Below the pieces are notes generated by a model. The model searched no databases. It was not told where the DNA came from and saw nothing but the letters and a program-made list of their open reading frames with translations. The position numbers and the translations under genes were made by a program. From Nageia nagi (taxonomy: Eukaryota; Plantae; Pinophyta), in assembly GCA_050084985.1 (NCBI GenBank), contig JBITNC010000002.1, positions 17,360,001 to 17,424,000 on the forward strand: a DNA stretch of 64,000 nt, read 5' to 3'. Shown here in pieces: positions 1,686-48,371 of the stretch. The number at the start of each line of letters is the position of its first letter. The stretch's first letter is position 1.

Positions 1686-2039
1686 AAGCCTCCCCTCTTG
1701 AATTGATTTCCCTTAAGTAATGGTAGGAGATAGCTAAGAGTTATTTTCTAATAATCCTTTAGTATCTTTAATTGCACTTTGCTTCTTTAAAAAACCACCC
1801 AGATATCATGTCCCTCTAGTTGAGGTGAGTCTTCAGTGCTGACTAGTCTACTACCCTGCGAACTCATGATGTATCCATGACCATCACTTCTTAGGATATG
1901 TTCATGGATGAATCTCTCTAACCATAGAACTAAGTGTTCTCTTATAAGGAATTGTACCTATAATATCTTGCAAAAAATGATTATCATCACAAAATGTGTT
2001 GGAATTAGGTCCCTTTTAAGATTCCTACCGATCCCATCA

Positions 2040-2500
2040 AGGAGTAATTCCCCAATCTACAATGTGGGGTTCTAGAACTCTTGAACACTTTGTATAGGTA
2101 CTTCTTCTCTCATCCTCAACATGGGATCCCCTCCTAATTGTAAACCCAATGAAGCTCCCTCTAGTGTCAGCATGTCCAATGTGGGGTTCCAGAACTCCTA
2201 AACACTTTGCATAAGCACTTCTTCTATTCTCATGCTCAACATAAGATCCCCTCCTCCTTGAAAACCTAATGAAGCTCCCTCTGATGTCAACATGTCCAAC
2301 ATGGGGTTCCAATATCCTTGGACACCCAACGTGACTTCCCCAGATGGCCTCCTACCTAATGTGGGGCTCTAACCTCCTTGGCTACCAAATGTGGCTATCC
2401 TATCCCTGTTCAAGATCAACATGGTACTCCAACCTTCTTAACCACCAAACATGGCTATCTTATCCCTATCCAGGATCAACGTGGTCCTCCTAATATCATC
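2040..2500 (-). repeat. Tandem repeats (~118-120 bp, then ~60 bp units) lying where RT-RH-INT would be in element A
   Basis: aatgtggggttc-type starts at 2061, 2178 and 2298. ORF 2037-2312 repeats EPH(V/I)GH.D.RGSFI.F..RRGS.VE. Confidence 0.8.
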
Positions 2501-2563
2501 CCATCCCAACTCCACTAACTCTAGCTGGTTGTTGATCCTCTATGTGTCCTCATCTCGTAGCCC

Positions 2564-3736: not shown

Positions 3737-4876
3737 CTTGTTGATCTTATGTTGTAGATCTCTCTTTCTATCCCACTACCCTCCTGACTTACATTGGCCA
3801 TGTGAGCCACTCTTCAACCCCAGTAGCTCCAAATAATTGCTAAAATTGATGTCTCACCTCACATCTAGATGCAACATGTTGTAGTCTCTGTGATGCTTGT
3901 TTAGTTCCAATGGACCAGCCACCCTTGCTCTAGGGTCTTCTCTCTTTTTTGATGCAAACATGGGCTTGTTTGGCCTAGGAATGATAGGTTGATCATCCCT
4001 TCCTCCAACGTTGGTTTCCAGATACCATTTGAGAAGGGGGCTCTCCTGCTATGGTATTTGCTATGATTGGGATCTTTGGAATTATTACACAAATTATTCC
4101 TTAGACCCATAGATGGAGTCCTTATCTCTCATACTCTTAGATCTCCTCAACGAATGCTCCCCTTCCATATGATCACCCTCTTAAGATCCTTCGAAATCAT
4201 TCTCATCTTGACATGGGGGTGGAGTTGCTTCCTTGGTGTGATGTGGGGTCCTAAAACCCTCATTCTCTCACTGTAACTCCTTTGGACCTTCACTAAGTTG
4301 ATGTGGGCCTTCATGGCCTCCCCTATCACCTCATTGGGCTTTATAGCCTCTCTAAGTGTGGCATGGATCCCGATCCTCACTATACACCACTCGTGGACCA
4401 ACTCCCTCATCTTTGATCCTTTGTCCATGCCTTCTTTTGTTTGAGTCATACCGAGAAGGTTCCTAATAATTTTGTACATGGATCCTTGCTCTCAACTCTT
4501 CTCTTCCTTCTCTTCTCTGTTGATCTCCTTCATCTACCTTGGCCCAATACCGATCCATTCTTTGCTCCAATGATCTCATGGTTCCAGTCATGCTATGTAA
4601 GGATGAGATCAAATCCCTAAACTCCCATTCAAGTGTACCATCCCTATCCTTCCTCCTCTCAACCAGAGGTTCTTCTTATGCTGCTTCCTCAAACCTTGGC
4701 CTTGGGATTTCAACATCTTATCCAATCTAATGTTTGGCCTCTTCCTCCTGATGGCCATCTTTAGATCTCCTACCTCTCCTAATAGATAACATCTCTCTCT
4801 TATTGGATCTGGTGTAATAATGGTAGATCTTGGGTTTCATATAATAGGCTAGTAAGATCTAAGATTTTATACCACT

Positions 4877-6113
4877 TATGATGATCTAAAATCATCCTTA
4901 GAAAAAATAACTCCACTACAGTATTCAAACCCTCAACTAATGAAGCAAACACACCCACATTGGGCCCCTAGGGCACCCAAGGAAACTACACATGCAGACA
5001 TGAGCCTCCCAAGGCCTCCATGTAACCCATAAACCCTGATGTCATCCCTCTAGTGTACACATAAATACTTGGTACCTCAATGAATGCCTCATAGATTAAT
5101 ATACAATGCTTGAACACCCATGAATGCAATAAATCTTCCTACACCAGCATACAAGAGACACACACATACATAAACAATGCATAACATAATGGAGAGAGAT
5201 AAACCTATATTTTATTATTGAATGGTATGGAGTACAATGAGGATCTCAATATCCAAATCTAGGGTTACAAATCCTCTGCTAGCTGAACACCATAGGGAAG
5301 ACTCACTCCCTCAGACTCTGAATCCTCTCCTATGATAGATCCTCCTTGAATCTTGGTGACCACTGAAGGTAGAATCTCACCCTCAGAATACCATCAAATG
5401 GACTAGGTGACCCACCTAAGTCATAAAATGCTAGGATCCCAACCCTGTCACTCCTTTAGACATCATCTAGGAATAATGCTCAACATCGTAAAGACTTGTA
5501 TGCTCAATCAATTTCAGTATAGAAGAAGTATAATCAATAGCTAACCTTCTCATTAAGTTAAATCTTCAATATATAGCCTCCCTTGTCTATCCATCATACC
5601 TCGTTATCATCCCAAGCCAATTCGATTTCAATGTTGGGGTCAACAAGTCAACCATGCCAACATGGGGGTCACATTGGCCTAGTATGCCAACATGGAGGTT
5701 CTATTGGTCCAGTATGCTAATGTGGGGTTCCCATGGTGTGCCAATGTGGGGGTCATAAAGGTCCTCAAGGATGATGTGGGGTCTAATGGGCCTCCTCAAG
5801 CTAACGTGAGGGTCTAAGTGACCTCATAAGCTAACATGGGGAAATCAAGACCTCCCAATGCTAGTGTATTCTTATGCTCACTCTAGATTGTACAAGATTC
5901 ATGCTTATTTAGGGATTCCCATAATCTAGGATAACCCATTACAAACTAATACAACAATACTCAAGGGGATACATCCCAATATTAGGCTCACAGTGGGCTT
6001 TGCAAACCATAAGCTTCTGCTTGAGTTACACATGTACAACATGATCATAAATAAACATTAGATTACAAAGTGACCATGACACATTTTATTAATGGTCCAA
6101 ATGGGACATCACA
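4877..6113 (-). repeat. 5' LTR of element A
   Basis: Direct repeat of 461-1685, adjacent to the PBS and followed by the TSD TCCAT. Confidence 0.93.
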
Positions 6114-6118
6114 TCCAT

Positions 6119-6620
6119 GCACCCAATTCATGGTTTATGGGTATTTTTGTAGTGAATTTCAAAGCTTCCTCAAGATAGCCTTCACAAACCATAATATTCA
6201 ATTTACAATCACCAAGTATACACATTCACATATATAATTCATGGTTTATGAGTATTTTGGAATTCAAGTTCATAATGCTTCCTCAATATAACCTTTATGA
6301 ACCATAACATTCAATTTACAAGCAAGTAAATACATCCACATACCCAATTTAGGGTTTATGGGTATTTTGGTAGTAAAGTTTGAAGCTCAACAATGCATGT
6401 ATAATGATTCATCCCAAGAATAATGTAATAAGAGTCAGTCAGATAAAAGATTTTAAAGGCATCCTTGTTGTAGCCATGAATTGCATATCCTCCAATCATT
6501 ACATTATATGAACCTATGTTTGTATCATGCATCTTGTCAAATAAGTCTTGGGCCTTGTGTATTCTTCCATACTCTGCATGCATGCCTATTAGAAAATTCA
6601 TAACCACAACATTTGATGCA
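6119..6620 (-). pseudogene. PLS-class PPR gene fragment plus ~2.5 copies of the 111-bp PPR-derived repeat
   Basis: ORF 6356-6607 reads ...LIGMHAEYGRIHKAQDLFDKMHDTNIGSYNVMIGGYAIHGYNKDAFKIF...GMNHYTCIV. It continues across the empty site of element A into 420-460. Confidence 0.85.
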
Positions 6621-6621
6621 A

Positions 6622-8250
6622 TGATCTTAAATAACTAGGGATGAGGGGGGGACTCAACTCACTGGTCAAGGAGCTTTTCCCCAATGACTAATGAACTCCT
6701 GCAAATGGTTGACTTCTAGAGAAACCTTGTTAACTTGATCAGTAATCTGAAACCAGATGTCATAGAAAATGATGAGCTTGTCAGCCAAAGAAAAATCTAT
6801 AGAAGGAACTTTCCTAGAAAAAATAACTGCATTCCACTCTTTCCATAAATGGAACATAATTCTAATTTAGAAAATCTTCCAAAAATCTTCCAAAGGCATG
6901 CAAAAATCTGGGGGATCTCCAAAGAGATTGTTAAGCTAGGAAAGAGGTTGCTACGAAAAATGGTTGGAAAAAGGAAATCATCTATTTCCATGCCTTTTGA
7001 GATTTACCATAATGCCAAATCAAATGCATAACTAACTCTTCAGAGTTACAAAATGAGCATAAAAGATTAACAACCCCCAAGTGTGTAAGCTTGTTCCCTA
7101 TAGGTAGACCGTGGAAAATCAAACTCCATGCAAAATAAGCTTGCTTAGGTTAAATATATCTAGCCCACATAATCTTGTATTGAGCACTCCACTCAAATAT
7201 AGTGGAGGGGAGGCACCAATGCTCATTAAGCTTAGGAACCATGGGAAGATTGGGAGAAATCCAATTGTAATCCTCTTAGTCCTGTAATTAAAAATTGGAG
7301 AATCCTTGATCCATTTCCTTTCTATCCATCATGGGCATTGCAAATGTTGTCCAAGATTGGGTCATGATGAAAATGGAGTGCAATTGAGCATTATTTCGTA
7401 TGTATCCTTATCCTTAGATTTCATAGGAAATCTAAGTTTGAAATCCTCATAGGGAATCCACCCTTTAGAGGAATGATTAAAAAATCAAAGCGGGAGGTAA
7501 TAACTTTTTAGAAGAATTTCTTGGCTTAAATCCATTGAATGGAATCAAGAGGTTGATTCTACAACTTGATAATAGAAGACCATCAGACATTAAGGGAAGT
7601 AAGAGTAGACATCTTGAAATACCTATGAAACTAGACCTTGGTGAGGTGTGTAACATGGTGTAGAGGGGAAGGGAGATAGGTGTACATGCAGAAGGAGGAA
7701 TCGTGAGGAGTCATGGGTAGAAGAGGAATTTCCATTCAAGAGATTGAAATCTCCTCAGGCGAGTGTGAAGAGCAAGAAGCTGGTGGAAAAAATGAATGAG
7801 AGTTTTGTGAAAGAAAAATAGGGAGTGGGGAAGGTGATGAATGTACAAGGAAATACAAGAGTGAGCAATGGACAAGGCTGAGCCATGATTTAGAATACTT
7901 AGAGTATGGTGGCAATGGTTGATCTTCCAAATGAAAGAAGGTAAGGTAAAGAACAACAAGGAAATGAGTGGTGCAGTTTGTGAGGAGAAACAAGAGTGCA
8001 TAACAAACATGGTTGGAAATTGATTTGGAATACCCATACCAAAAAGGTCATGGTGATCTTTCCGAATTGGGAAGATTCGGGAAAGGATGTTAGGGGGATA
8101 GATGGTGTAGGAACAATAGGAAATATTGATATACATAACTACCACACCAAGGTATGGCTTCATAGGAACCTCTCAATATCTCTTCTCTCTCATAAGTATT
8201 CCTTTTCTTTCCTTTTTATGAAAAATTAGGTATCAACCTGGTATTTAAGC
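6622..8250 (+). mobile_element. Possible orphan LTR followed by a degenerate PBS
   Basis: PPR similarity stops abruptly at ~6620. The segment runs TGAT...ATCA (8235) and is followed by tggtatttaagc (8239-8250), resembling the iMet PBS tggtatcagagc. No partner LTR or TSD was found. Confidence 0.35.
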
Positions 8251-11749: not shown

Positions 11750-14700
11750 GATGGTGGTTAGGGTAGCTCCAAAGAAAAGTTAAAGGTTGTAACGATGCAA
11801 GCATCCTACTCCTAAAAACCTATATCATGCTTTTATGTATAGTAACTTGGGAAAATGACCCCACTCATCATGTGGTATGGATCATGCTATAAGTAGGTGA
11901 AATATCTTTCAACATAATTAATATTTATGCCTCAAAAAAGGATTTGGATAGATGCACTTTATGGAAATGATATGCATTTTCCTTGTCACCAATTGTTTAG
12001 ATTATGTTTGGGAATTTCAACATGATTGAAAAGGTATTTGATAAAAAAAACTCCACTCCCAATAAGTGGTCCACTAGGGAGATACAAGTGTGGTTTTTGA
12101 TGAAGAACAAGCTTAAGTTGTCAGATCCTAACTCATGTTTTCTAGCATACCACTTTTTAAAACATATGTGGTACATGTGGTTTGATTTCTAAGTTGGCCA
12201 TAGAAAGGTGCTCAAATGACTCGAAAAGTAATGCTTATTGATAATCAAGAAGTTTCCCCCCCTATCAAGAGTCTTCTGGCCCATATGTCAAGACAATCCT
12301 AAGTTTTATTTCCTCTGATCATTCACCCAACATGTTTATTACCTCCCACAAAGATATTACAAAATTTAATTATTTATAAATACTTCTTTTCTTTTGCAGT
12401 ATGCCATGGTTTTTCATATCTAATGAGTTTGGAACTTGGTTCCTAGATAGATGAGAGCCTCATGATGGATTGAGTGGTGGAATGATGCCATATTTCATAT
12501 AACTACATTACTTCGTAGTTTAGGAAAAACTGTTGCTCAATTTCATTTCCAATATGCCTCCTCTATGAGAGATAAGGTAGGTAATTCCTCTATACATTTG
12601 GAGTCCAATCCCTTCAATCACCACTTGCAATCCCATATAGCTCATATAAAACATAAGCTCAAGCTAGTAGAACTATATGAAGCTAAAGGAGCTCAGATAA
12701 AATCTCATCTACATTAGCTAAAGATTGATGATAAGATCACCAAATATGTTTTTTAAATACTTCATCCACAAAGGCTAGCTACTCAATTCAAAGAAATTGT
12801 AGATGATGAAGTTCAAATCACCTCTCTATCTGAGATTGCTTCATCTTTCTCCATCCATTATACATAAGTCTTTTTATCTCAACCATACACTCTTGACAAA
12901 ATTCAAGCTCTTCAACTTTGTAAAAATGTTTTTCCTTCATGAATTTCTCCATATAAAATAGTAAGAGTGTGACAAACTCCTTTATCTTAAAGATCTAGAT
13001 GAAGTACTCTCTAAAATGTTAGATGGTAAGAACCCTTACCTAAATGTATTTCCCTATTAATTTTACAAAATGTGCTAAGATTTTTTTGGCTTTGACTTGT
13101 ATAAAGTCTATATTGAAGGCTTGAATACAGGTTCCCTTGGTTTGATCATAAATAAGGGTAATGTCAAGTTCATTCCCAAATAATGGTACCCTAAGCTTAT
13201 CACCAATTATTGACCTATTACCTTACTAAATGTAAGCTACAAAATTATTTCTAAGGCTCTTTCCCTTAAACTTCATTCTCTTCTTCCTCTTATTATTCAC
13301 CTAAAACAAAATGGGTTCATTTAGAATAGGTTTATATTAGACAATGCCATTGTAGTTTGGGAAGACATGAAATGGACTTAGATATTAAATCAAAAAACCC
13401 TCTTCCTTAAATTGATCTTTAAAATGTCTTATGATTGCATCGAATGGACTTTCATCCTATATATATTAGAAGATATTTGATTTGTAACTCAATTTCTAGA
13501 TGTTATTCAAGGATGCATATGTATTGCTTTCTCTAAATATTTTTCAAACAAAAACAAATAGACTTCATCAATATATTCGACAAGGATGACCTTTGGAAAT
13601 TTTTCTCAATGTTTAGTAGTATAAGTGTTTGGATACCTACTTGCTTGACATTCTTCTAAGGGTAGACTCAAAGGTATCTCTCTACTAGATAATTAAGGCC
13701 AACTTATCAATGGCCACTTTGAAGATGACTCTTTCGTCACTTCAAAGAAGTATGAGCAATATGTATATGAAGCTCTTAATTTCCTAGATATTTTTTGTAA
13801 AGCCTCAAATTTAAATGGAGGAAAACATTTTGTTAGAGGAAATCTCCACTATCCATTCCCCCTATCTTCTAAAATTCCCATGGAATTGGATACTTCTAGG
13901 GAAAGTTCTCAAAATTTTAGGAATTATATTTACATTACAGGGCTCACCTTTACAACTATGGTGCTATATGATCAATATGGTGGAGAAAAATTAGACCATT
14001 GGAATTCTTAAAAACTCTTCTTCGCTAGAAAATTCCATATTTATTCTAAAATCCTTGCTTCCATTGCATACTATTCCTCATGTTGGGTTCCTTCTCAAGT
14101 ATGCTACGATAAACTGGAAAAGCTTTTAAGAGATTTATTACGGAAAAATAATGCAAATAAAAATGATTTTCATAGAGTAATGAGGAGTACCTATTTCCTT
14201 CCCAAAGAATCTGGCAGCATGGGGCTCCTAGATTGTAAGCAACAAAGTGTTTATCTTTATGCCAATGGATTTTAAGAGCTCTTAAAGGTACAAAATCATA
14301 GAATATTCTCATTTTCCATTTCATTTCTTTTGTCCTTCCTCTCAATTGAAAGGCATGGAAGGGTATGGATTTCCTCATTTTGATTATTTCAATAGTTTTC
14401 ATTGAAATTCTAGGCTCATTTGTTATTAGGATTATTTACAAATCTTGGAAACAACTTATCCCCTAGATCAAATGGAAAGGTGAAAGTTTTCATATGAGTT
14501 TTTCAATTAACAAAATCAACATATGGTGGTCCTCTCTCTTTCATTTTATGGCTCACCTCTAGCGCAAATTCAATGGATACATACCATAAATCATTTTAAG
14601 AGAGGTATTTCCATAATTACAATTTTTTTCTCTTAACATACCTTAGACTAAATTCCTTGGGAGGAGTTCAAACACAGTTTTTCTAACTACTATGAATAAA

Positions 14701-15195
14701 GCTACCTATGATACCATTATTGAACTCGCACCTTTATCCATGCTACATAAGATAAGTGTTTATTTTCAAAATCTATCATGGAAATATTGGGGTTGATATG
14801 TGAACATCCCTCTTCTCAATTATAAAGCTTATTTGGATTATGCTCATCTCTTACCAATGTCACCCACAGCCCCTAAACTGAAAGAAAATTAGGACCTTAT
14901 TTTTGGACATTCATGATGGAAGTTTTATTTTTCTTCAACCTAATATTCCTATCTCGATCCTAAAAAATCATTTGTTTTCTTAGATACTATTAAACTAGGG
15001 GCTTCTACTTTATTCTTTCCTGCAACATTTACATATCCCTGACCTAAGGTGCCCTTTCTGTAATGATCCAGAATCATGTATGCACATATTCTAGTCTTGT
15101 AAATATTCCAAAATAGATTGGTAATGGATAACTTCTTTTTTTGCTCCATACATGCTGACTCATTCTTCATGGAAGCATTCTTTATTAAGTGATAC
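11750..15195 (+). mobile_element. LINE (L1-like) ORF2 pseudogene, 5' part (endonuclease, RT, zf-RVT)
   Basis: Motifs seen: INIYA, GNFNMIE, SDHSP (EN); PITLLNVSYKIISKAL, RQG*PL, GHFEDDS (RT); CPFCNDPESCMHIF*SC zinc finger at ~15050-15100. Many stops. 10700-11750 may be a decayed ORF1. Confidence 0.88.
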
Positions 15196-15529
15196 CATTA
15201 GATCAAAAAAGGGTTTTGGGGGCAAGCGATTTGATGTGGTTTTTTTAGATGATTTTTGATCTCCTTAATATTAAGTTTTAGTGGTGGTTTTTATTGGAAA
15301 ATTTAGAATCACCCCCAAAAATTATAATGAGGCAAAGTAAAACCATCCCTTAATAAAACCAAAAATTCTTAAGAGGGCACTTAGAATATTTTAACCATTT
15401 TGAGTTTGTTGGTTGAGGCGTTACAGGAGAGAAAGGGGTCTTTGTAAGGTGAGATGAGCAAAGATGAGGTGATACGACAAGGTGAGAGGAGGTGAGATGA
15501 TGAGATGAGAATTCTTCCCCATATTTTAG

Positions 15530-15934
15530 ACAACACATTTTATGTATAGCTTGCAATCATTGCATACCATGAAACTATGTTTATGTCATGCATCTTGTCA
15601 AACAATTCTTGAGTCTTATGTATTCTTCCATATTTTTCATATTTATGGACCTTTTTCAAAAAATCCATTTTGTGTGTATTCAAGGTTTATGGGTATTTTT
15701 CCATTGAAATTCAAAGCTCCCTTAAGATAGCATGCATGAACCATAACATTCGATTTAGAAGCACCAAGTAAACACATCCACACACCCAATTCAAGGTTTA
15801 TGGGTATTTTGGCAGTGAAATTCAAAGCTCCCCCAAGATAGACTACACAAACCATAACATTATATTTAGAAGTACCAAGAATACACATTCACATAGTCAA
15901 TTCATGGTTTATGTGTATTTTGGCATTGAAGTTT
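15530..15934 (-). repeat. PPR fragment plus start of the 111-bp PPR-derived tandem array
   Basis: ORF 15643-15888 reads YLGGALNFTAKIPINLELGVWMCLLGASKSNV...YTQNGFFEK. The aagatag anchor sits at 15724 and 15835. Confidence 0.88.
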
Positions 15935-17342
15935 TGTAATGTCCCCATTTTTATGGTGTTTTCTCCATTTCACCTCTAATAAATGGGAATATTAGATTAG
16001 GAGTATTTTTAATTAATTTTGGTAATTTAGTAGAATTTATGCCCAATTATTGTAAGTTCACTTGGAGAATAATTAATTACTCCAATTATGGGATGTTGGG
16101 GCCTATTTTAGTATTTTAAGAATTATTTTATATTTTAATGCTAATAATTATGTAATTAAAAATATCAAGGCAATTATTTATTATAAATACAATATTAGTT
16201 ACCATTAATGGGATGTTGCATATATTTAGCCTTGATAAATGTAATATTGATATTAATGGGCCTCTTTTGTAATAATTTATCCCCTTTCAAGGTAAAGCAT
16301 GATACCAAGAAATTTTACCTACTACGAGGCATAGGAAGACTCCACACTTGGATGTTGGGATTGAGTAGGAAGATTGAACCATTAAGATGTGAAATTGGGC
16401 ATCCCAAGATACCCACATATCCCTTGGAAGATCTTAGACTAAAGTTGGTGATATCTAGGTGTATGGAAGACTCCCATAACCCAACGTTAGCATTCCTAAA
16501 CTTTGGATGTGATCACTCCCATATCGAGGCATCTTGATCTTGGATGTGGGATGTGAGAGCAAACATATCATCCTTGGATACCATTGGATGAGATCACATC
16601 AATCCCAATGCATGATTAGAAGAGCTACCTCATCTATATAAGTAGGATTCCTAAAATACCAAAGGCATGCGATTATTATTAATTCTTCTCTTCTTGGTTG
16701 GTGAGCTTGTCTTTTCTATAATTCCACTTCTTCAAAGTGAGGTACCTATAGTGGGTTGTAGTAGAAGACTTACATGGGCACACACTTGGGGGTTGGTGCA
16801 ACCAAAGTTGTCAGCTAGCTATCCAAGGATGTTGGCACTATCCTATATTATTATAACACTATCAATGGATCTTTAAGATCCCACCATAGCTACTTACCAA
16901 GGAATCCTTGGTACACTATTTGTCACACTATGGATACTAATCCCTAGAGCATCAGTCCCTAGGAATAATATTGTAATTGATATTCATCACCATTTTTGTA
17001 TTTGAATACAATTACATTATTTTGCTATTATCTTATCATTTATATCCTTATGCTTGGATGTTGGATCTGGTAAGGGTTTTGCATTCCTATTTCATAAGTT
17101 GGCTTCCTTAGGCCCTAAGTTGGGTATTTATGAGTATTTGATAAGTGTTTGCTTCATTCCTACCAATAATAGCTAGATATTGGATTACTTACTTAATTTT
17201 ATATATTATTGGTGAGATTTGGATATGTGAAGGCTAATGTCGCTCTCTTAAAGCATGTTTAGTTGCTTTTCATATCTCTTGCATTTTGAACTTAAGGGAT
17301 TTAGGAAAAAATCCATAGTGAGCCCAAGTTAGGCTCATCATA
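15935..17342 (+). repeat. 5' LTR of element B
   Basis: Runs TGTAATGTCC...CTCATCATA (terminal CA mutated to TA) and is followed by the PBS. Confidence 0.93.
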
Positions 17343-20336
17343 GTGGTATTAGATCCATGATCTTGCCATCATGATGGTTAAGAAGGGAAAAGGAGAATTT
17401 GAAGATCTTTGATACCAACTCATAATGGTATTAGAGCCAAAATCTTACCATCTTATCGGGTTAAATCTTGGAGGAATTTTTCAACTATTGAAAGGAGAAT
17501 TCTAAAGAAGTTGGAAGGAGATCTCTCCATCTTGTTGGAGAGTAACTACTGAGTAATATCTTATCATACTGCAAGAAGATCTAAGGAGTGATATATCATA
17601 GTGGTATTTACCTAAGATCATAGTGATGTCAAAGAATTAAGGAGGTTTGATATGAGATTTGAAGGAGAAGAGAGCTCTTTGAAGCTTGGATCTAGCTCAT
17701 TTGGACACTAGAGAGTTGACATTGAGGTTGTAGCATCATTTATACTAGATTTGGATACTAGGAGACTTACATTGGATATCTAGGAGGTAGATATCACCTT
17801 TTGGTATTTCAATGGACCTAATTTGACTACATTTTCGAGTTTGAAGGCTTTAAGGAGGATCATCTAGCTTGGAAAGAGGTAATTTTCAAAAAATTTCTTA
17901 ATTATCATCAAGTTTGAGGTTTATTTCTACATTGAAGGCCTAGATTTGGGTTTATTTGGACATTATGAGGCTAATGTGGGGGATTTGATCAGATCTAGTA
18001 TTTCATGCCATTTGTGTATGAACGTTAAGCTTGGAGGAGGCACATATTTAGTCAGAGTTGATTTTTAGGCCCATAACCCATAGGTTTGATTAATTTATCA
18101 CCTAAATCAAATCATACACCATGCAAGGAATTAAATATTAGGTTTGAACTATTTTAATAATGTAAATTTATTTGAAGCTTAAAAATATTTATGGATTTAA
18201 TTTATTTTGAGTAGGAGAAATAAGGAGGAAAATTAAAACTAAAATTTGGAATTCTTTTACTTAATTTAATTTGACAAGAAAACTAAATTAGGAGAAATAA
18301 GGAGTTTTAATTATTTAAGAAATTTTGAAATTTAGAGGGAGAGCAGATGCAAATATGAAAAGCAAATTTCAAATAATTTTGAGACACTATAAAGCTAGAT
18401 GTGAGGAGTGCTAGGAGGTCACACCATTTTTGTAAAATAAATTCCAAAATTTAGAGTTAGAGGCAATTCGTTGGGGCATTGAGAAGTTGGAAGATTATTG
18501 TTGGGCATCTTGAGAACCTCAAAGCCATTTGTTTTGCATTTTAGAGACTAGGAGGTAGATGTGGCACATCAAAGAAGCCTGAAGTGAGTAATTGGATATT
18601 TGGGAAAACTTTTGAAGCTATCACATGCACCCTAAAATTCATTAGTAATACCAGCATAGGAATAAGAGGTAGGATGATGAAATATTAGATCAAAAGTTAG
18701 ATGCTTTTATCAATCTTATGAATCAAATGATGGCATAATTGAAACCACCTAATCGAGGCACCCTAATTGAAAGTGAGGGATCATCCAAGTAGACACCATT
18801 ACAAACCAACAAATCATTATTCACACCTAAGTGAAGTCCAAAAATGGAACTTAATGAAGCTTAAATGGAGTAAGTGCTACAAGAGTACATGGATAAGCTA
18901 GATTCCTTCAGAGAAACTGTCTCATTTCAAACCTATTGGTATGCTTTGAAAATATGGAAGCACTAGATGTATCCTAAGCATTTAGATGATAAGAGATTAA
19001 AAATGCCTTTGCCTATTTTTAATGGAGGAGAAAAGTTATCCGCTAGGGCCTGGTTACGAAAGCTACAAATTTATTTCTGATCACTCTACCCAATGGATGA
19101 AGAAGAGGAAATAATTATAATATCAATGTATCTTGATGTGATAGCTTATGAATGGTGGCATAATGGTCTCACTACACTAGACCATGGAGATGTCAAGTGA
19201 TTTAAGGATTTTAGCATAAGAATGCTAAACATATTATATAGAAGAACATTTTAAGGAGTTAGCATTGCTCAAACAAACTACCACAGTTAGGGCTTTCATA
19301 GAAGAGTTATAAAGAATTGCAGTTATTATTCCAAATATGAATGATGGGAGACTCACATACCTCTTCATAGATGGGTTACAAGAACCCATGAGATCATCAC
19401 TCAAGGCCATGGAACCTCCAACATTTGTAATACCTACTTAAAAGGTACTATTATTGGAAGGGTCTAGTAAACCTAAGGAAGTTACAACAAAACTAATGAT
19501 GATAGGTTCTCCAATAGCTATGAAAACCAAGGTACCCATAGGAGGAATACCTTCACTACTTCCCTCAAAACTTCTTAGCAAAATGGATTCTACAACATGA
19601 GAAGAACTAAGGAAGAAAAAACTTTGTTTCACCTGCTAGAATCCATGTGAAAAAGAATATCGATGTAATGGAAAGGTGCAAAATCTATATCTTAAATTCC
19701 TTGAGGTAAAGGAAGAATCTGATGATTAGTTGAATACTTGCCAACATGAGATTGATGTTAAAGATATTAGAGGAGCACTCACCTCCTTGAAGGGACCATC
19801 CCAATTAATGACAAGTGATGTGGATGGGACTATTGATAATAGCAAGGTTGTGGTCTTGATTGATGGAGGGGACACTCATAACTTTATCGATGAAGAATTC
19901 ATATGGAAGAATGGGTTCAAAACTTAGGAATTCCCAATATTTGAAGTGGTTGTTGGTAATGGAATTACTACATCAAGCAATAGGATGGTAGATAATGTTA
20001 AGGTCAAATTTGGAGAATACATTATCATTAGAGAGTTCTATATTTAACCACTTAGAGGATTACCACACTTGGTGCTAGGAGTTCAATGATTGTATATGGT
20101 TGGATAAATTACCTCCAACTATAAAACCTTAGAGATGAAATATAAGGTTAAAGCCCAAGAAGTTATACTACATGGTATTAAAGAAGGCCAAGGACTTGGT
20201 CACCAAAGGATGGAAGCCATCAAGAAGATTTACCCAGAGTTCATTGAAGATGAATACAAAGAGGATCTTGAAGACTTTATTATAGTTGGAGATGTTTTGA
20301 ATTACTTGGGGACAAGCGATTTGGGAGGGGAAAAAT

Positions 20337-21738
20337 TGTAATGTCCTCATTTTTATGGTATTTTCCCCATTTCACCTCTGATAAATGGAAACATTAGATT
20401 ATGAGTATTTTTAATTAATTTTGGTAATTTAGTAGAATTTATGCCCAATTATTGTAAGTTCCACTTGGAGAACAATTAATTACTCCAATTATGGGATGTT
20501 GGGGCCTATTTTAGTATTTTAGGAATTATTTTATATTTTAATGCCAATAATTATGTAATTAAAAATACCAAGGCAATTATTTATTGTAAAAGTAATATTA
20601 GTCATAATTAATGGGATGTTGCATACATTTAGCCTTGATAAATGTAATATTAACATTAATGGGCCTCTTTAAAATAATTTCCCCCTTTTGAGGTAAAGCA
20701 TGATACCAAGGTATTTTTACGTACTACGAGGCATTGGAAGACTCCACACCTAGATGTTGGGATTGAGGAGGAATATTGAACTATCAAGATGAAAATTTGG
20801 GCATCCCAAGATACCCATGTCTCCCTTGGAGGCTCTTATATCGAAGTTGGTGATGTCTAGGCACATGAAAGACTCCCATAATACAAAGTTAGCATTCCTA
20901 TCCCTTAGATGTGATCACTTATATCTTGAGGCATCTTGATCTTATACATGGGGTATGGGAGCACATAGATCACCCTTAGAAACCATTAGATGAGATCGCA
21001 TCAATCCCAACACGTTATTAGAAGAGCTACCTCATATATATAAGGATGATTCTTGGAATACCATAAGCATGTGATTATTATTACTTCTTCTCTTCTTGGT
21101 TGGAGCTTGTCTCTTCCAAAATTCCACTTCTTCAAAGTGAGGTACCTATAGTAGGGTGCAATACAAGATTTATGTCGACACACACTTGGGGGTTAGCATA
21201 ATCCAAGTTTTCAGATAGCTATCCAAGGATGTTAGCATTACCTTGGATTATTGTAACATTTTCAATGGATCTCTAATATCCCACCATAACTATTGATGAA
21301 GGAAGCACTAGTGCATGCTTCACCACATTAGGAATCCTAAGCCTTGGAGCATCAATCCCTCACAACAATATTATAATTAAGGTTCACCACCATTTATGTA
21401 TTTAAATATAATTATATTATTTTACTATTATCTTTTCATTTGGCTCTTTATGATTGGATGCTAGATCTAAGAAGGGTATATTTTGTATTGATATTTTAGG
21501 CTTTCTTAGGCCCTACATTGGGTATTTGTATGTAGTTGATAAGTGTTTGCTTCATTCCTGATAATAATAGCTATACATAGGGTTACTTGCTTGATTTTGT
21601 GTATTATTGGTGAGATCTAAAGTTGTGAAGGCCAATGTCCCTCTCTTAGGGTGTGTTTGGTGGATTTGCATGTCTCTTACATTCCATACTTTAGGGATTT
21701 GGGAAAATCCCTAATGATCCCAAGTTAGGCTCATCACA
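20337..21738 (+). repeat. 3' LTR of element B
   Basis: Runs TGTAATGTCC...CTCATCACA, preceded by the PPT and followed by the TSD. Confidence 0.93.
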
Positions 21739-21743
21739 AGTTT

Positions 21744-22260
21744 AAAGCTCCCTTAAGATAGCCTACATGAATCACAAAATTTGATTTAGAAGCATCAAGT
21801 ACACACATCCACACACCTAATTTAGGATTTATGGGTATTTTAGAAGTGAAGTTTAAATATCCCTCAAGATAGCCTATATTAACCACAACATTCGATTTAG
21901 AAGAACCAAGTAGACACATCCACATTCCCAATTTATAATTTATGGGTATTTTGGTAATGAATCTCAAAGCTCCCTCAAGATAGCCTATACAAACCATAAC
22001 ATTTAATTTAGAAGCACCAAGTACATAATCCACATACCCAATTTAGGGTTTATGGGTATTTTGGTAGTGAAGTTCAAAGCTCCCTCAAGATAGCCAACAC
22101 CAACCACAACACTTGATTTAAAAGCACCAAGTAGACACATCCACATACCCAATTTAGGGTTTATGGGTATTATGGTAGTGAAGTTAAAAGCTCCCTTAAG
22201 ATAGCCTCTATGAACCAAACATTCAATTTACAAGCACCAAGTAAACATATCCACACACCA
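21744..22260 (-). repeat. 111-bp (37-codon) PPR-derived tandem array, continuation (~4.7 units)
   Basis: Anchor aagatagcc at 21755, 21866, 21977, 22087 and 22198. The unit translates GYLEGALNFTTKIPINPKLGMWMCLLGASKSNVVV.., resembling the PLS S2/E1 region (AGYLEEALNFI.KMPIKP...VWMCLLGAC). Confidence 0.92.
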
Positions 22261-23289
22261 TGTTACATTATTTTCATCTCATCATTCTATTTATACAACA
22301 TGACATCCACTTGGGAGCAATATGTTTTTTTTGTATTTGGCTAATTATTATAGGCATATTTTTGAATACTTAGATTAGAGATTCAAGGCATCCTTTTTGT
22401 AGCCATTAATTGCATATCCTCCAATCATTGTAGTCTAAAAGAATGTTGAATCAAAAATAAGTTTTACCTTATCTATGATGTGATTAGGTATCAGTGAGGG
22501 ATCAAAGAAGATATTTAATGGTGAGATAACATTTTACGAAATACTAGATTATAGTAAGTTTTTATAATAATCGTACGTAGAGTGATTCAAAGTGAGTATT
22601 TCCTCTAGGACATACCTATTTTGATTCACCCAATGTCTGGTTATTGTTAGAAATTATTGCAAATATCATTTTGTATAAGCATTAAAAATTATGAGATATC
22701 AAGTGTTGGATTCCTTCCAAGTATATATTTACTTTTTATATATGTGTATTTATTTATATTTTACTTATGTATTTCTTACCTCTTCTAGGATATATCTCAT
22801 ATCCTTCACCTCTTAAGATTCATTGGCATAATTTCTTATTTCAAGCTCACGTCGTTTCTTGTTTCAAGAATGTTCAAGAATTACATAATTATTCTCTACA
22901 ATACTTCTACAACATGTCACAATTTATGGTCTACAATATTGCTCAAATGATAAAGATTTAAATATGTTCCACATTTCTTTATTTGGCAAAGTATAACAAG
23001 CCAAGTATTTTTGATACTTAGGAAATTTATGGATTGAAAATTGCTTTCCTTCTTTAAGCCAATTTTTGGATCATATAATGTATTTAAATCATTTCATATC
23101 ATATGTCATACTTTATTTGTAAATAAGTTCTAATACATACTAGGAAATGATGGAACCCACAACATGTTCCATTATTTTTATCTCATCATTCTATATACAA
23201 TATAACATCCACATGGGAACTACAATTTTTTTGTGTTTGGCTAAGTATTACAAGCATGTTTTGCCAACTTTACACTTTTGGAATGGTTT

Positions 23290-25545
23290 TTAGATCATTT
23301 TATATTATATATATATGGTGCACTTGAATCATATGATATCATATGGTATACTTAGATAATTTCATATCATATATGTGGTGCATTTGGAACATTTCATATC
23401 ATATGGTGTACTTAGATTATTTCATATCATATTGTTGGAGCATTTAGATCATTTTGTATCATATGGTACTATTTTTAAATCATTTAATATTAAATTATAT
23501 ATTATATTTAAATCATTTCATATCACATGGTATATTTATATATTTTAGTGGGAGATGAATTAAATCATTTCTCAGGATAGCCTGCATGGCCAAGAAGGTA
23601 AATAATTTTATCAAATGATATATGGTTGAATCATTTCAGAATATATGATAGATGAGACTAAATTATCACTTTTAGATTGGTTCTTAACACTTAAAAATTT
23701 ATGTCATGACACAAGCACCAAGTAGACACATCCACACACCTAAGAAGCACTTTTTGAAAAATTGCAATGGAACATAAATCCTGATAGACATGTATGCAAA
23801 ATGTGGAATATGCATAATGCAGATAGTTTCATAGATTGCAATGTGAAAGATGCATTATGCAGATACAATTTCATGGGCCTGGTGTATTATTCTTTCATAT
23901 TTGCAAGGATCTTAGGTGGACATTTAGAATATTTTAACATTTAAAGTTTTTCAAGTTTGCTAGTTAAGGGGTTAGAGGAGAGAAAAGGGCATTTTGCAAG
24001 GCAAGACGAGAGGAAATAAGAATTTATATCATTTCATATCATATAGTCTATTTAGATATTTTAGTGTGAGGTCTGAATGAAATCCTTTCTCAAGATAGCT
24101 TTCACGACTAAGAAGGTCAATAATTTTATGCATTTAAATGGTGTATAGTTTCATTATTTTAGAACATATGGTGGATGAAGTCAACTTATCACTTTTAAAC
24201 TAGTTTTTAATACTTAGAAAATTATATCATAACATAATTGACAAACAACCACCAGTAAAGGAGATCACCAATTATGTCATTTGTTAGGAAATGAAGGAGA
24301 TCATAACATATTCTATTATTTTAGAGGTTTCAAATATACTTAGATCATATCATAACAAAATTTCATATCATATAATGTATTTAGATCATTTCATATCATA
24401 TGGTATAGTTGCATCATTTCAAAACATATGAAGTAACCCATAATATGTTCTATTATTTTCAACTCATCGTTATGTATATACAACATGATTCCACTTTGAA
24501 ACCACATGTTTGTATTATAAGTATGTTTTTACCAACTTACCACTTTTGGATCGATTTTTTATACTTATAAAATTCCATATCGCATAGTCTATTTAGATCT
24601 TTCAATTGGAGGTATGAATTTGTTGGAGGTTTAATATAACATATTTGATGCTTCTATTACTTCATGAGGTTTCATATAATATGTTGATGCATTTAGTTCA
24701 TTTCATATCATATATAGTTCACTTGGTTCATTTCATATCATATGATATACTTAAATTATTTTATATCATATGCATGTTGCATTTAGATCATTTCATGTCA
24801 TATTATGCACTTGGATCATATAGGTTGAACAATTGCTTTCCTTCTCCAATTGCCAAGATCTTATGGGTTGGATGTGCACAAAATGGATTTTTTATAGCAT
24901 GAGTGATTCTTGAAGAAGGTATGGACATACATCAAAGAGTAGTTGAAAATGGGTTAACAATATGCATGATGTAGACACAATTTCATGAAATGCAATGATC
25001 ATAGGATATGCACAAAATAAGTTTTCTAGAAAGGCTCTAGAGACTTTTAAGCAGATGCAATTTTTAGATGTAAATCCAAACTCTATAACATTCTCCAACA
25101 TGTGCCACCATGGGAGATCTAGAAGAAGGTATAGACATCTATCAAAGAGTGGTTGAAAATGGTTTTGCATCAAATATAGTGGTTGTGAGTATCATGATAT
25201 ACATGTATACAAAATATGGAACAATACACAAGGCTTGAGAATTATTTGACATGATGCATGATTGCAGGATATGCAATTTTATTTAGATCTTTCAGTGGGA
25301 GTTCTGAATTTGTTGGAGGTTTAAGATAACTTATTTGATGCTTCTATCACTTCATATGTTGGTGCATTTAGATCATTGCATATCATATATAATATACTTG
25401 GTTCATTTCATATCATATGGTGTACTTAAATAATTTCATATCATATACATGGTGCATTTAGATCATTTCATACCATATGGTGTACTTAGATAATTTCATA
25501 TCATATGTTGGTGTATTTATATCATTTCATATCATATGATGCACT
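23290..25545. repeat. Clusters of ~28-32 bp tandem repeats (tggtgcatttagatcatttcatatcata) and shuffled duplicated blocks inside the CACTA element
   Basis: Clusters at ~23290-23540, 24330-24430, 24685-24820 and 25355-25545. Block duplications: 22262~23163~24443, 23540~24058 and 24590~25280. Confidence 0.85.
24860..25265 (+). pseudogene. PLS-class PPR fragment (L-S-P motifs) in + orientation
   Basis: Reads EEGMDIHQRVVENG / MHDVDTIS*NAMIIGYAQNKFSRKALETFKQMQFLDVNPNSITFS / MGDLEEGIDIYQRVVENGFASNIVVVSIMIYMYTKYGTIHKA*ELFDMMHD. Confidence 0.9.
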
Positions 25546-25774
25546 AAAAAATTATTTTTATTCTCTAAGTACCAAGATCTTGTGGGTTGGATTTCTTTGC
25601 CCCTAGGAGACTTGTACGAAGCATAATGCATGGTAACATTATGAATAATCTTGAAACATAACGATGATATATATTGAGAGCTTATAAATGTATCTAACCC
25701 TAACTTATCAAATTCATGATATTTCTTATAGGTTCTCTTAGGGGTTATGACATCTGATCATTGTAATTACATGA

Positions 25775-26490
25775 AATTATCTTTGAGATCTTAGCTTTGA
25801 ATTTCCTAAATACCCATATAAACCTTGAATTGGGTGTGTGTATGTGTCTACTTAGTGCTTCTAAATCGAATGTTGTTGTTCATGCAGGCTATCTTGAGGT
25901 AGCTTTGAACTTCATTGCCAAAATAACCATAAACCTTTAATTGGCTATGTGGATATGTTTACTTAGTGCTTGTAAATCGAATGTTGTGATTGTGAATGTC
26001 CTTATAGACATGTATGAAAAATGTGAAATAATACATAATACTCAAGAATTATTTGACAAGATGCAAACATAATTTCATGGTATGCAATGATGGTAGGATA
26101 CACACAAAATAGATTTTTTGAAAAAGGCCAATCGACACATATGAAAAATGTGAAAGAATACATAAGACCCAAGAATTGTTTGACAAGATGAATGACTTGG
26201 ACATAGTTTCATGGTTTATAATTATTATGGGATACACACAAAATGGGTTTTCTTAAAAGGCCCATAAACACATGAAAAATGTAGAAGAATACATAAGACC
26301 TAGGAATTGTTTACCAAGATGCATTATACAAACATAGTTTTCATGGTCTACAATGATTACAAGATACATACAAAATGGATTTTCTAAAAAATATAAAGAA
26401 GTACAAGGCACAAACATATATGTAGAATGGAGAAGAATACAAGGTCATGGACTATGGAAGATACAAGGTCACGAAGAAGGAAAGCAACTA
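25775..26490 (+). repeat. Inverted copy of the PPR modules: ~2 x 111-bp units, then 3 x ~127-131-bp units
   Basis: ggctatcttgaggtagctttgaacttc is the rc of the 111-bp unit. Anchor atacataa at 26031, 26158 and 26289. The unit resembles DMYEKCGRIHKTQELFDKMH.NIVSWYAM..GYTQNGFFEK. Confidence 0.88.
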
Positions 26491-27331
26491 TTTAATCCAA
26501 AAAATTTCTTGGAGAAAGAAAGCAATTGTTCAATCCAAAATTTTTCTAAGTGTTAAAAATTAGTCCAAAAGTGGTAAGTTGGCAAAATCACACTTGCAAT
26601 ACATATCCTGCAAACATAGAAAAAACTCACATTTCCTACAAATTGGTGAAGGTATGAAGCAAACAAATACACACTACAAAGATTAAGTATTATTATTATT
26701 CTATTTTTCTTTTGGTGCATTTAGATCATATGGTAAGAAGCACATAAGTTGTATGTTGTTCATATTTATTTAACCTAATTATGTATGATGTGTTTATTGA
26801 AATTTGTATACTTTCATAATGATGTGAAATTATTTGATAATTATATGGTGTGCACATAATTTTATTTTTTATGTTAATAGTTCAATTTATTTTCAGTTGT
26901 ACTATGTATTGGAAATGTATAGGTGAAGTGATTGGTCAAATCCATTGGGCTATGCTTCAAGAGCCCATGACCAACACTATATTTGGGCTCACTATGATTG
27001 AGCTTGGGTGTCTTGGGTAACCAAGGTTGGTGTAGCCTAGAAGAATTCTTCCATTTGTAAGAATTCATCTAAGTTATGCTCCTTTTTTTAAATGTAATTA
27101 TTAAGTGATGAGTTAAAATTGCCCCCTTAAACTATAACAAGGTAGTTTAAAACCTCCTCTTTATAACCCTAGGTGGCAGTTTAAAGTACCATATATTGAT
27201 GATTATTACCTGCCACCATATGGGATCAAATTTTGGTAGCACCCTCATAGATGATGGTTAAATAACTACCTGTAAAGATATTAGGTGATGATTTATAAAT
27301 GCCCCCAAAGGTCCTTTTTCATCTAGTGTAC

Positions 27332-28230
27332 CTTCACCCTCTTCCTCCCTTTACAAGAAGTTTGAAAAATCTTTAGATTTATACTCTTATTCTATATTTG
27401 GAAATTAGCTAGGAATAAGATTATCTTCAAAAATGCAAAACCATATATGGATTTTTATCTCATTGATAAATTAAAAATTTTCTTTGATGTATGGCTACAG
27501 ATCATTGACCAAGATCACAAAGTGGAGGTTGAGTTGGTGTACTTACACACCTTGTTGGATTACTAAGGTAATACTCCTTATGCCAATACTCAATTACCTC
27601 CTAGTCACTCACTATAGGATCACTTAAGGTCACACTCATGCCAACATCCTTCATCGTATGTGTGGATGCAACATGTGGACCATCACTAGTATTAGCCTTC
27701 TTTGGTGTGAAAAATGCTACAATGATGTAAGGGCAAGCTTCTCTTACCAAAATGATGGATGGATCATTCAAGCACAACCATTATTAATAATCCAATGCAA
27801 CATAGATGGTCTCATCCTTCCAATCCTATCCAACCTATATCTAGGTGGGGAGATGAAATGGAAAATAATAGTAGCCCCTTTTTCATCCCAATGATGGTTG
27901 GGATTTGATATCCATCCCTTCCAATCAATGGAAGTGCATGGAATATCTTGATACTACCACTCAAGGTGATCTCAATAAGGCCAATGATTTATGTTATATA
28001 TTTGGTTAGCCACTATGTTATGATGGCTTATGCTACTTATTTTTGTAATTATTTTGGACTTTAATGTTCTGACTCATGGTTAGGGTTAATGTGAATAATT
28101 TTTTGGTTTCCTAACCCATAGTTAGGGTTAATATGAGATAATTTTAGGGTGTGTTTTCTACCATCCACCACTCTCTTTTTTATTGTAAAAGGCTTTTTAT
28201 TTCAATAAAATGCATTTTTAACAAAAAAAA
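27332..28230 (+). mobile_element. 3' remainder of the LINE split by the CACTA element
   Basis: In-frame YIWKLARNKIIF (the WxIWKxRN motif of the L1 ORF2 C-terminus), AATAAA at 28204 and an A-run at 28223-28230. Confidence 0.75.

Positions 28231-29444: not shown

Positions 29445-29491
<47 letters not shown>

Positions 29492-48340: not shown

Positions 48341-48371
<31 letters not shown>

Follow-up and report, generated by a model that had tools for sequence, protein, structure and literature searches.

A fossil copy of a probable non-autonomous CACTA transposon family with PPR-derived arrays in the genome of Nageia nagi

In the Nageia nagi genome, a probable degenerate LINE ORF2 is split by DNA rich in fragments of pentatricopeptide repeat (PPR) genes, which raises the question whether a single transposon carried these fragments there and, if so, of what kind. 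The window analyzed in this work is a stretch of 64,000 nt (contig JBITNC010000002.1, positions 17,360,001 to 17,424,000 of the forward strand). Its region 15196-27328 is interpreted here, with a probability of roughly 0.85, as one fossil copy of a non-autonomous, Pack-CACTA-like family of CACTA (En/Spm-type) DNA transposons.

Ends, insertion site and nested retrotransposon

Inverted ends of the CACTAG type, each 29 nt long, delimit the region, and a TAC/TAC duplication flanks it. The right end starts with CACTAG and the left one with CATTAG, one transition away, in agreement with a 5'-CACTA terminus, and 15196-15224 matches the reverse complement of 27300-27328 at 22 of 28 ungapped positions, as the first-pass annotation of this DNA had reported. 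A search with the 29-nt TIR pattern recovered just these two sites (0 expected by chance), and in a window-wide scan the 15196/27328 pair was the only CA[CT]TA pair of at least 19/28 with a matching 3-bp flank. The family end consensus, built from 7 further ends, reads CACTAGACCAAAAA. The TAC target site duplication (TSD), reported earlier as well, was found on both sides (Table 1), and its 3-bp length is that of the CACTA/En-Spm superfamily. Subterminal repeats, also claimed for this element, amount to no more than a few G5C/C5G-containing motifs recurring near the ends, which is a weak point, and the subterminal blocks are conserved across copies.

The description of the element as an insertion into LINE ORF2 that rejoins in frame was borne out: the flanks, with one TAC removed, read through (...SWKHSLLSD/TFTLFLPL...IWKLARNKIIF). 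The empty-site comparison was made on LINE paralogs. Against the flanks keeping both TACs, the uninterrupted LINE paralog of contig L003 shows a gap of exactly 3 nt, and an in-window paralog, 6622-7507(-), is continuous across the insertion site. The paralog stretch homologous to the flanks gave a Pfam match to zf-RVT that stays below the cut-off (E=2.2e-4); for the L003 paralog, RVT_1 was matched with E=0.027. The LINE flanks themselves gave no Pfam match; CPFC..H..C and IWK.RN..IF motifs are visible in them by eye.

The proposed LTR element nested in the region was recovered with all its hallmarks. It is 5.8 kb long, and has LTRs 83% identical to each other and ending in TG..CA, a 5-bp TSD (AGTTT at 15930-15934 and 21739-21743), a PBS-like TGGTATTAGATC, a PPT and gag/protease remnants (RVP_2, E=1.6e-4 in Pfam).

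In agreement with the reported absence of a transposase, Pfam revealed no transposase domain in any open stretch of the element or in the unmatched interior of its complete relative in contig L005. A TnpA-like appearance of L005:5742-6527, noticed by eye, was unsupported by Pfam. As host-gene fragments are carried and a transposase is lacking, the element fits the definition of a Pack-CACTA; its CACTA superfamily assignment follows solely from the CACTAG terminus and the 3-bp TSD, no autonomous copy with the same TIR having been found in the window or among the nine loci described below. Judged by the Pack-TYPE classification of PMC8903248, it is TIR- and TSD-bounded, devoid of a transposase, significantly matched to host coding genes and, given a second copy in the window and those in L003-L009, not a singleton.

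Table 1. Features in and around the putative CACTA element (feature, window position, strand, evidence or remark)
Feature	Position	Strand	Evidence or remark
Second, truncated family copy, same orientation	1..6634	+	left TIR beyond window start
Second copy, left arm	1-460		
Second copy, different LTR element	461-6113		TSD TCCAT; again within 111-bp array
Second copy, array and PPR 3' region	6114-6634		
Host LINE (degenerate ORF2), upstream of insertion	12643..15192	+	homology to L003 LINE copy; in-frame rejoin
Left TSD copy, TAC	15193..15195	.	3-nt excess vs LINE paralog
Left TIR	15196..15224	+	CATTAGATCAAAAAAGGGTTTTGGGGGCA; aligned with four other left-type ends in alignment A1
Left subterminal region	15225..15523	+	GGTGAGA-rich stretch 15440-15510; conserved in other copies
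Module B, PPR S/P fragment (..MYEKYGRIHKTQELFDKMHDINIVSWYAMIASY..)	15524..15677	-	tblastn, 50-62% aa identity to real PPR proteins; weak Pfam PPR
Module C part 1, 111-bp tandem array from PPR P2-end/E1 motif	15678..15934	-	split by LTR element
Nested non-autonomous LTR retrotransposon, gag-protease only	15935..21738	+	LTRs 15935-17342 and 20337-21738
Module C part 2, 111-bp array, ~4.7 units, 84% alike	21739..22259	-	tandem repeats and tblastn
Module D, degenerate PPR S1-P-(L2)-S2	22260..22476	-	tblastn (P0078, P0027, P0137)
AT-rich interior, repeated modules	22477..24859	+	28-32-bp and 60-bp tandem repeats; ~520-bp units
Module G, best-preserved PPR P-L-S stretch	24860..25280	+	one 11-nt deletion, one stop
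Module H, 28/60-bp tandem repeats and spacer	25281..25792	+	tandem-repeat evidence; copy comparison
Module C', 111-bp units inverted vs left arm	25793..25991	+	80-89% complementary; inverted repeats I1-I9
Module B', PPR S/P fragment as 131-bp tandem array, ~2.9 units	25992..26471	+	repeats, Pfam, tblastn
Right subterminal region	26472..27299	-	conserved in L005 and L009
Right TIR	27300..27328	-	CACTAGATGAAAAAGGACCTTTGGGGGCA
Right TSD copy, TAC	27329..27331	.	3-nt excess vs LINE paralog
Host LINE, downstream of insertion (..IWKLARNKIIF..)	27332..27650	+	in-frame rejoin; LINE paralogs

PPR-derived modules and their decay

Without the nested LTR element, the element measures 6,324 bp, in accordance with the ~6.3 kb estimated before, and ~38% of this sequence is derived from PLS/E-class PPR genes. 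The PPR identity of the modules is backed by 6,364 phmmer matches, and tblastn with 150 real PLS-PPR proteins and the PPR-derived repeat ORF P0001 as queries gave matches at 15402-15861, 21743-22476, 24783-25280, and 25797-26574. The P, L and S motifs of the PLS-class source are recognisable by Pfam at 24989-25153 (PPR/PPR_2, about at the curated cut-offs) and 6359-6634, and by tblastn against long PLS proteins, with matches covering L-S and S-P stretches. Module G matched Pfam PPR_2 (7.7e-7) and PPR (1.2e-5) and showed 45-54% aa identity in tblastn; in the second in-window copy, 6359-6634(-) matched PPR_2 (3.3e-11). Module D runs colinearly with the 3' portion of genuine PLS-E genes before it continues into the E1 array, 22476->22048 following the order S1-P-L2-S2-E1 in tblastn. 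In P0027, P0137, and P0078, the segment aligned with the 111-bp unit is GYLEEAL.FI.KMPIKPD.VWMCLLGACRSH (43-53% identity), and the assignment of the unit to E1 is based on tblastn, since the ORFs of this unit gave no Pfam match, the E motif included. For the 102-aa ORF of the array one homologous protein was found, P0001, to which, given the length filter, little weight is attached.

The PPR fragments listed in the first-pass annotation were thus upheld by tblastn and Pfam as to their identity, with the reservation that 23710-23880 is just a short E1/LIDMYAKCG junction fragment within the AT-rich interior, recognised through the DNA repeats D9 and D19. This interior also includes a duplicated module (22260-22345 and 23166-23250). 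A "skips 909" joint, considered as a nested insertion, was rejected, as it corresponds to the duplicated internal module. Short tandem repeats had been predicted, and repeats of 28-32, 60, 111, and 131 bp are present; the period of the 131-bp array is not divisible by three, so the array is out of frame. The left and right PPR arms are inverted relative to each other and 80-89% complementary over 84-177 nt. The picture of a fresh mosaic copied from many PPR genes had to be abandoned: the pieces are family-wide modules, tandemly amplified, set in inverted arms and neutrally evolving.

Stops and frameshifts occur in every PPR piece, and no intact or constrained ORF of a functional gene was found. 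Stops are present in five of the seven module G copies, and a sixth (L004) has a frame-breaking deletion. Diversity by codon position, calculated from the copy alignments, was 0.25/0.21/0.21 and 0.29/0.24/0.29, which amounts to equal values for the three positions. The DNA of PPR origin does not code for protein and evolves by neutral drift. An Rfam search of the whole window gave no match.

Further copies, abundance and competing readings

It had been proposed that the termini recur elsewhere, and they do so in independent contigs. With the 111-bp unit as bait, nine metagenome contigs were recovered, which added five left ends and two right ends to those of the window copy (left-type in L003, L004, L005, and L006/7; right-type in L005 and L009); their outer flanks are unrelated and homology begins exactly at CACTAG (alignments A1, left, and A2, right). 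Family ends were present in five of the seven distinct baited loci. The PPR-derived modules of these other copies, whose existence had likewise been anticipated, lie at the same places, 250-500 bp inside the ends, and the module order is the same in the contig copies and in the second in-window copy. It should be stressed that PPR presence in the contigs follows by construction, because a PPR unit was itself the bait, so the ends are the informative part, and the PPR-baited loci cannot give the fraction of the family carrying PPR sequence. In the sole complete extra copy available, L005:2676-10810 (8.1 kb), the two flanks join up as continuous B-module sequence with 3 nt in excess, and the TSD is degenerate (CTT/TAT). 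The ends are 66-73% alike between copies, and exact and degenerate TIR patterns gave 0 matches in the metagenome contigs because the ends are too diverged for an exact search. That 15196-27328 belongs to a family is newly shown here. Neither the recurrence of the ends, nor the cargo of the other copies, nor the LINE paralogs contradicted the first-pass interpretation.

Sequencing runs from four organisms each yielded 15,000-69,000 contigs lying on 21737-27700, about 0.1-0.3% of the contig records read. Contig depth, when summed, is ~500-1000x lower at the right end than on the PPR pieces. Rarity of the termini was rejected as the explanation, as the ends fall under the 85% cut-off used and depth is not a copy number.

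The same depth profile, in which the 111-bp unit and module G reach 10^2-10^3x the sum on the right terminus, could also mean that other vehicles carry most of the PPR-derived DNA, the arrays being an independent, genome-wide dispersed or satellite repeat spread by LTR elements, MULEs or plain tandem arrays, for which the CACTA family is a secondary carrier or a frequent landing site and not the driving force. We consider this reading possible but doubtful. It agrees with loose ends, where PPR sequence goes on in genomic relatives beyond a break in this copy, with P0001, a distinct tandem ORF of PPR origin recorded from another sample, and with L001 and L002/L008, module scrambles without a family end within the contig. 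However, the loci with family ends hold the modules at fixed positions from these ends, the modules are multicopy per element, and the ends diverge past the cut-off, depth being no measure of copy number; moreover, the idea of many carriers is compatible with the main explanation and does not exclude it. Far less probable, and the least so of all the readings weighed here, is that there is no single transposon, and that a chance TIR pair, or the ends of two neighbouring elements, surrounds a PPR cluster decayed in situ. Ungapped CA[CT]TA pairs of 19-22/28 are indeed common in sequence as AT-rich as this, with 11 in the window and 2-12 in shuffles, and for Pack-CACTAs a capture by two elements has been modelled (PMC6379663, PMC8903248), but only one pair has a matching TSD, the reading frame of the host LINE is restored with an excess of exactly 3 bases, and both end types recur with the same internal architecture, the complete L005 copy included.

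The inverted PPR arms, given their complementarity, could also be read as a hairpin locus whose small RNAs silence or methylate PLS-PPR editing-factor genes, i.e., as a TE-borne regulator. Captured fragments have been reported as siRNA reservoirs for maize TEs (reviewed in PMC13317346), and a regulatory role was suggested for the antisense PPR fragment of the grapevine Cactavine-5 (PMC2528002). We nevertheless hold this to be improbable: no RNA run among the sequencing runs was found to contain the sequence, no Rfam family matched, the arms are now ~18% mismatched and separated by 10 kb that include an LTR element, their evolution is neutral, and only about 45-60% aa similarity to real PPR proteins remains, which makes long perfect matches to PPR genes unlikely. 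A shade less credible still is the broader proposal that the family, perhaps with other TE classes bearing the same cassettes, may serve throughout the genome as a source of hairpin or antisense small RNAs that keep the very large PLS-PPR editing-factor family under epigenetic or post-transcriptional control, or as a reservoir of E1 or PLS modules for gene conversion of real PPR genes. On the CACTA interpretation, the copy is old and immobile, and its family, though real and abundant, is of an ordinary kind.

Proposed history and relation to known elements

The history of the element may be outlined as follows. The family ancestor would have taken up the 3' portion of a PPR gene of the PLS-E/DYW class, a step we infer; its pieces would then have been rearranged and tandemly amplified inside the element (P2-end/E1 into the 111-bp array, S/P into the 131-bp array), and both arrays, as the present anatomy shows, ended as inverted arms just inside the subterminal regions. 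The multiplication seen in the copies was presumably driven by a transposase supplied in trans from a partner not found here. As the sequence shows, this copy was cut and pasted into the tail of the LINE ORF2, creating the TAC duplication, and the LTR retrotransposon entered it later, followed by decay of everything.

The class of Pack-CACTAs is already established (PMC6379663, PMC8903248). The element shares with the Pack-CACTA/Pack-TYPE elements of Arabidopsis (Catoni et al. 2019, PMC6379663; Gisby & Catoni 2022, PMC8903248) a non-autonomous nature, CACTA-type ends, a 3-bp TSD, and an interior of host coding fragments without a transposase, and the second same-orientation copy <10 kb away resembles the "local insertion" pattern described in these papers. 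The TIRs differ (CACTAGACC.. here versus CACTACAA in Arabidopsis), and, unlike in Arabidopsis, the cargo is common to all copies seen, tandemly amplified and set in inverted arms by the subterminal regions. The family is also very abundant, whereas Arabidopsis Pack-CACTAs are mostly low-copy with rather unique interiors, and it is known from sequence.

The only case of a PPR-carrying TE family that we found in the literature is the grapevine Cactavine-5 (Benjak et al. 2008, PMC2528002), a CACTA with part of a PPR coding sequence, whose antisense or regulatory role was only speculated upon. In that case, two copies of an autonomous-type family carry one fragment, downstream of the transposase ORF, whereas the present family is transposase-less, and PLS/E-type PPR debris in arrays makes up the share of its own sequence given above. 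Several host gene fragments are also mobilised by soybean CACTA elements of the Tgm-Express type (PMC1947982), but those stem from different genes, and splicing joins them into chimeric transcripts, in contrast to the single gene class, tandemly amplified and known from DNA alone, found here. Internal CACTA sequence turned tandem is known from CACTA-derived arrays and satellites of Chenopodium (PMC7320549), and a high copy number of a non-autonomous CACTA family from pvCACTA1 of common bean (PMC4938662); the arrays in these systems derive from the transposase (tnp2) region, and here from a host PPR gene.

These findings leave the current understanding of CACTA elements and of PPR proteins unchanged. 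The main practical effect of the PPR-derived DNA is the presence of many PPR-like pseudo-sequences in the genome. Numbering tens of thousands in the genomes concerned, they can make PPR genes seem more numerous than they are and give rise to false gene models (an ORF of this sort, P0001, has already entered a public protein collection), and they can contaminate repeat libraries or be wrongly removed from them. As to the family itself, it is a clear case in which captured host coding DNA has become a stable, amplified structural part of a transposon family, in the form of inverted arms and tandem arrays, and not a one-off passenger. The family offers a concrete substrate for asking if captured fragments act back, via small RNAs, on a large gene family.

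Ends, insertion site and nested insertions

Ungapped pairs of CA[CT]TA ends are no rarity in this AT-rich DNA: 11 pairs matching at 19 or more of 28 positions were found in the window and 2-12 in shuffled sequences. Among the 11, only the pair delimiting the element had a matching 3-bp flank (TAC/TAC), and a 29-nt pattern taken from its right end had two sites in the window, the element's own ends, with none expected from shuffles. Thus, the CACTA-type terminal inverted repeats (TIRs, mismatched at 7 of 29 positions) and the TAC target-site duplication (TSD) proposed in the first-pass annotation were confirmed. Equally, its claim that a transposase is absent held, as Pfam gave no transposase family match in any open stretch of the element.

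Features of the element and its surroundings (window positions)
Feature	Position	Strand	Details
Left end of element	15196	+	sequence start CATTAGATCAAAAAAGGGTTTTGGGGGCA
Right end of element	27328	opposite	reads CACTAGATGAAAAAGGACCTTTGGGGGCA
LTR retrotransposon nested in element	15935-21738		LTRs 1.4 kb, 83% identical, TG..CA; TSD AGTTT; PBS-like TGGTATTAGATC; purine tract
PPR-like sequence in element	15402-15861, 21743-22476, 24783-25280, 25797-26574		tblastn
PPR-like sequence in second copy	169-597, 5965-6763		tblastn
LTR retrotransposon in second copy	461-6113		TSD TCCAT
Uninterrupted LINE paralog	6622-7507	-	
Further LINE RT fragment	29454-29894	-	..FPCEFYKSIWE.., ..PITLLNILYKIISKAL..; then (AT)n/(TATA) run; no match in Pfam
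Direct repeats	47262-50149, 54865-57716		2.9 kb each, 91% identical, 7.6 kb apart; probably LTRs of a ~10.5-kb LTR retrotransposon
Copia-type retrotransposon (by eye only)	60297-63764	-	long open pieces; gag with CCHC knuckle, RT motifs and integrase-like motifs, RNase H-like piece

When the element and one TAC are taken out, the flanks form a single open frame (...CPFCNDPESCMHIF..SWKHSLLSD|TFTLFLPL..IWKLARNKIIF), which resembles the C-terminal end of ORF2 in plant LINEs. The host LINE has two uninterrupted paralogs, one in the window and one on the metagenome contig L003, that continue across the insertion site, and comparison of the L003 paralog with the flanks, both TACs kept, leaves a gap of exactly 3 nt; insertion into a probable LINE ORF2 tail that rejoins in frame was borne out. 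In the in-window paralog, the stretch homologous to the site matches Pfam zf-RVT below the cut-off (E=2.2e-4); the flanking LINE sequence itself, too decayed, gave no Pfam match. The element is bounded by TIRs and a TSD, lacks a transposase and was inserted by a cut-and-paste reaction duplicating 3 bp.

Since the nested LTR retrotransposon is an insertion, the CACTA's own sequence amounts to 6,324 bp, as estimated earlier (~6.3 kb). The interior of the LTR element retains gag-protease remnants only (RVP_2, E=1.6e-4), and the insertion interrupts a 111-bp tandem array that becomes continuous after excision in silico. In both in-window family copies an LTR retrotransposon lies inside the 111-bp array; the two are unrelated in sequence, differ in TSD and each hold gag-protease only. 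The left arm of contig L004 has a 3.8-kb block without match inside. This pattern, to which the nested L005 copy described below also belongs, could have arisen by chance, the genome being dense in TEs, or reflect preferential insertion into these arrays.

PPR-derived cargo and its decay

Queried by phmmer, an open piece of 92 aa from the second copy gave 6,364 matches, the best 150 of which were all long PLS-type PPR proteins, and tblastn of PLS-type proteins from the phmmer search limited PPR-like sequence in the 64-kb window to two loci, the element and the second copy. Pfam PPR_2 and PPR match 24989-25153 (E=7.7e-7 and 1.2e-5) and, more weakly, four other pieces. By tblastn against real PPR proteins, the 111-bp unit aligns with P2-end/E1 (GYLEEAL.FI.KMPIKPD.VWMCLLGACRSH, 43-53% identity), 22476->22048 is colinear with S1-P-L2-S2-E1, and 24860-25280 is a P-L-S stretch (45-54% identity). 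The S/P piece occurs at 15524-15677 and 25992-26471, the latter as a 131-bp tandem array, a period at which the reading frame cannot be kept. The PPR fragments and short tandem repeats described previously were recovered, the repeats measuring 28-32, 60, 111 and 131 bp. PPR-derived DNA makes up ~2.4 kb of the 6.3 kb; the remainder, rich in A and T, consists of ~520-bp units and repeats of 28-32 bp and 60 bp. The left arm B-C-D (S/P piece, 111-bp array and S1-P-(L2)-S2 stretch, antisense on the plus strand) and the right arm C'-B' face in opposite directions and are 80-89% complementary. An internal module is duplicated at 22260-22345 and 23166-23250 (~85% alike), and contigs of all four sequencing runs described below link 22316 directly to 23226, which indicates that other copies have one module and are without the intervening low-copy 909 bp.

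Seven copies of module G, the P-L-S stretch, were compared. For codon positions 1/2/3, the two parts compared gave diversities of 0.25/0.21/0.21 and 0.29/0.24/0.29. Stops are present in five copies, a sixth (L004) has a frame-breaking deletion, and the window copy has an 11-nt deletion besides. Given this equal diversity and these lesions, the PPR cargo is pseudogene DNA under neutral drift. Copies diverge by 17-35% and the nested LTRs by 17%; the window insertion is old and the copy dead.

Read in the sense direction, the 111-bp array is nearly open despite ~16% divergence between its units: at 21737-22227 (-) a single frameshift separates ORFs of 102 aa and 74 aa, and the left part, 15646-15888 (-), has an 81-aa ORF. 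P0001, a 177-aa ORF from the Logan assembly, consists of tandem copies of a ~78-aa chimeric unit derived from PPR sequence (HY.CIIDLL..YL.GAL.F...IPIK.ELG.WMCL...NSLIDMYAKC); being an array-type predicted protein in a public collection, it shows that arrays of this kind are annotated as genes.

Copies, abundance and proposed origin of the family

The second copy (1-6634, same orientation) contains a GGTGAGA-rich subterminal stretch, the B and C arrays and, matching PPR_2 at 3.3e-11, a PPR 3' region; on the left it extends beyond the window start, and on the right it is truncated at a LINE. A 22-mer of the 111-bp unit retrieved nine plant contigs from JGI metagenomes, reduced by overlaps (L006 with L007, L002 with L008) to seven distinct loci. 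Ends beginning CACTAGACCAAAAA.. are present in L003, L004, L005 (both ends), L006/7 and L009, and when the ends were aligned, five of left type and three of right type, homology began exactly at CACTAG and the outer sequence was unrelated. PPR modules follow 250-500 bp inward in constant order. A complete 8.1-kb copy (L005:2676-10810) has inserted into a different copy, within the B array; the sequences on its two sides are contiguous apart from 3 extra nt where they join. Among the baited contigs the termini named in the first-pass annotation thus recur, and the copies that they bound carry PPR sequence, although the presence of PPR follows from the bait.

Contigs from four low-coverage DNA runs (four organisms, three studies), aligned to 21737-27700 at 85% likeness or more, numbered 69,021, 55,421, 15,004 and 28,505, i.e., ~0.1-0.3% of records read, with depth maxima on the 111-bp unit and module G. 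At the breaks of the window copy, loose contig ends show relatives continuing as PPR (..ILPTCATMGA, ALIDMYAKCG, CIIDLLGHA). Parts of the stretch occur in DNA runs of at least six organisms and one air metagenome (X1-X8), which points to a group of plants that share the family and disperse pollen or spores by wind; no RNA run was among those listed as matching.

A less probable rival explanation is that PPR-derived DNA is carried by several vehicles. Family ends were found in five of the seven PPR-array loci, from which, the bait being the PPR unit, the proportion of members without PPR is not readable. Contig depth at the right end lies far below that on the PPR modules, which is not read as rarity, because depth does not measure copy number, the ends of different copies are only 66-73% alike and modules are multicopy within each element. 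The element itself belongs to a family with conserved, asymmetric ends and shared PPR-derived modules, which have been tandemly amplified, arranged in inverted arms and left to decay neutrally. A single capture, in an ancestor, may have brought in the 3' part of a PLS-E/DYW gene; internal rearrangement would then have joined an E1 piece to an S-motif piece (at '..LLGA.KSNVVV..LIDMY..'), arrays would have grown through slippage or unequal exchange, and an autonomous CACTA not seen here would have mobilised the copies in trans.

Pack-CACTA is an established class (PMC6379663, PMC8903248), to which we assign the element, and a CACTA with a PPR fragment was described in grapevine (PMC2528002); a full-text literature search of partial coverage found no TE family bearing PPR arrays. 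Compared with known Pack-CACTAs, the window family is notable for its high abundance and for a cargo that is common to the whole family and organised in tandem arrays and inverted arms.
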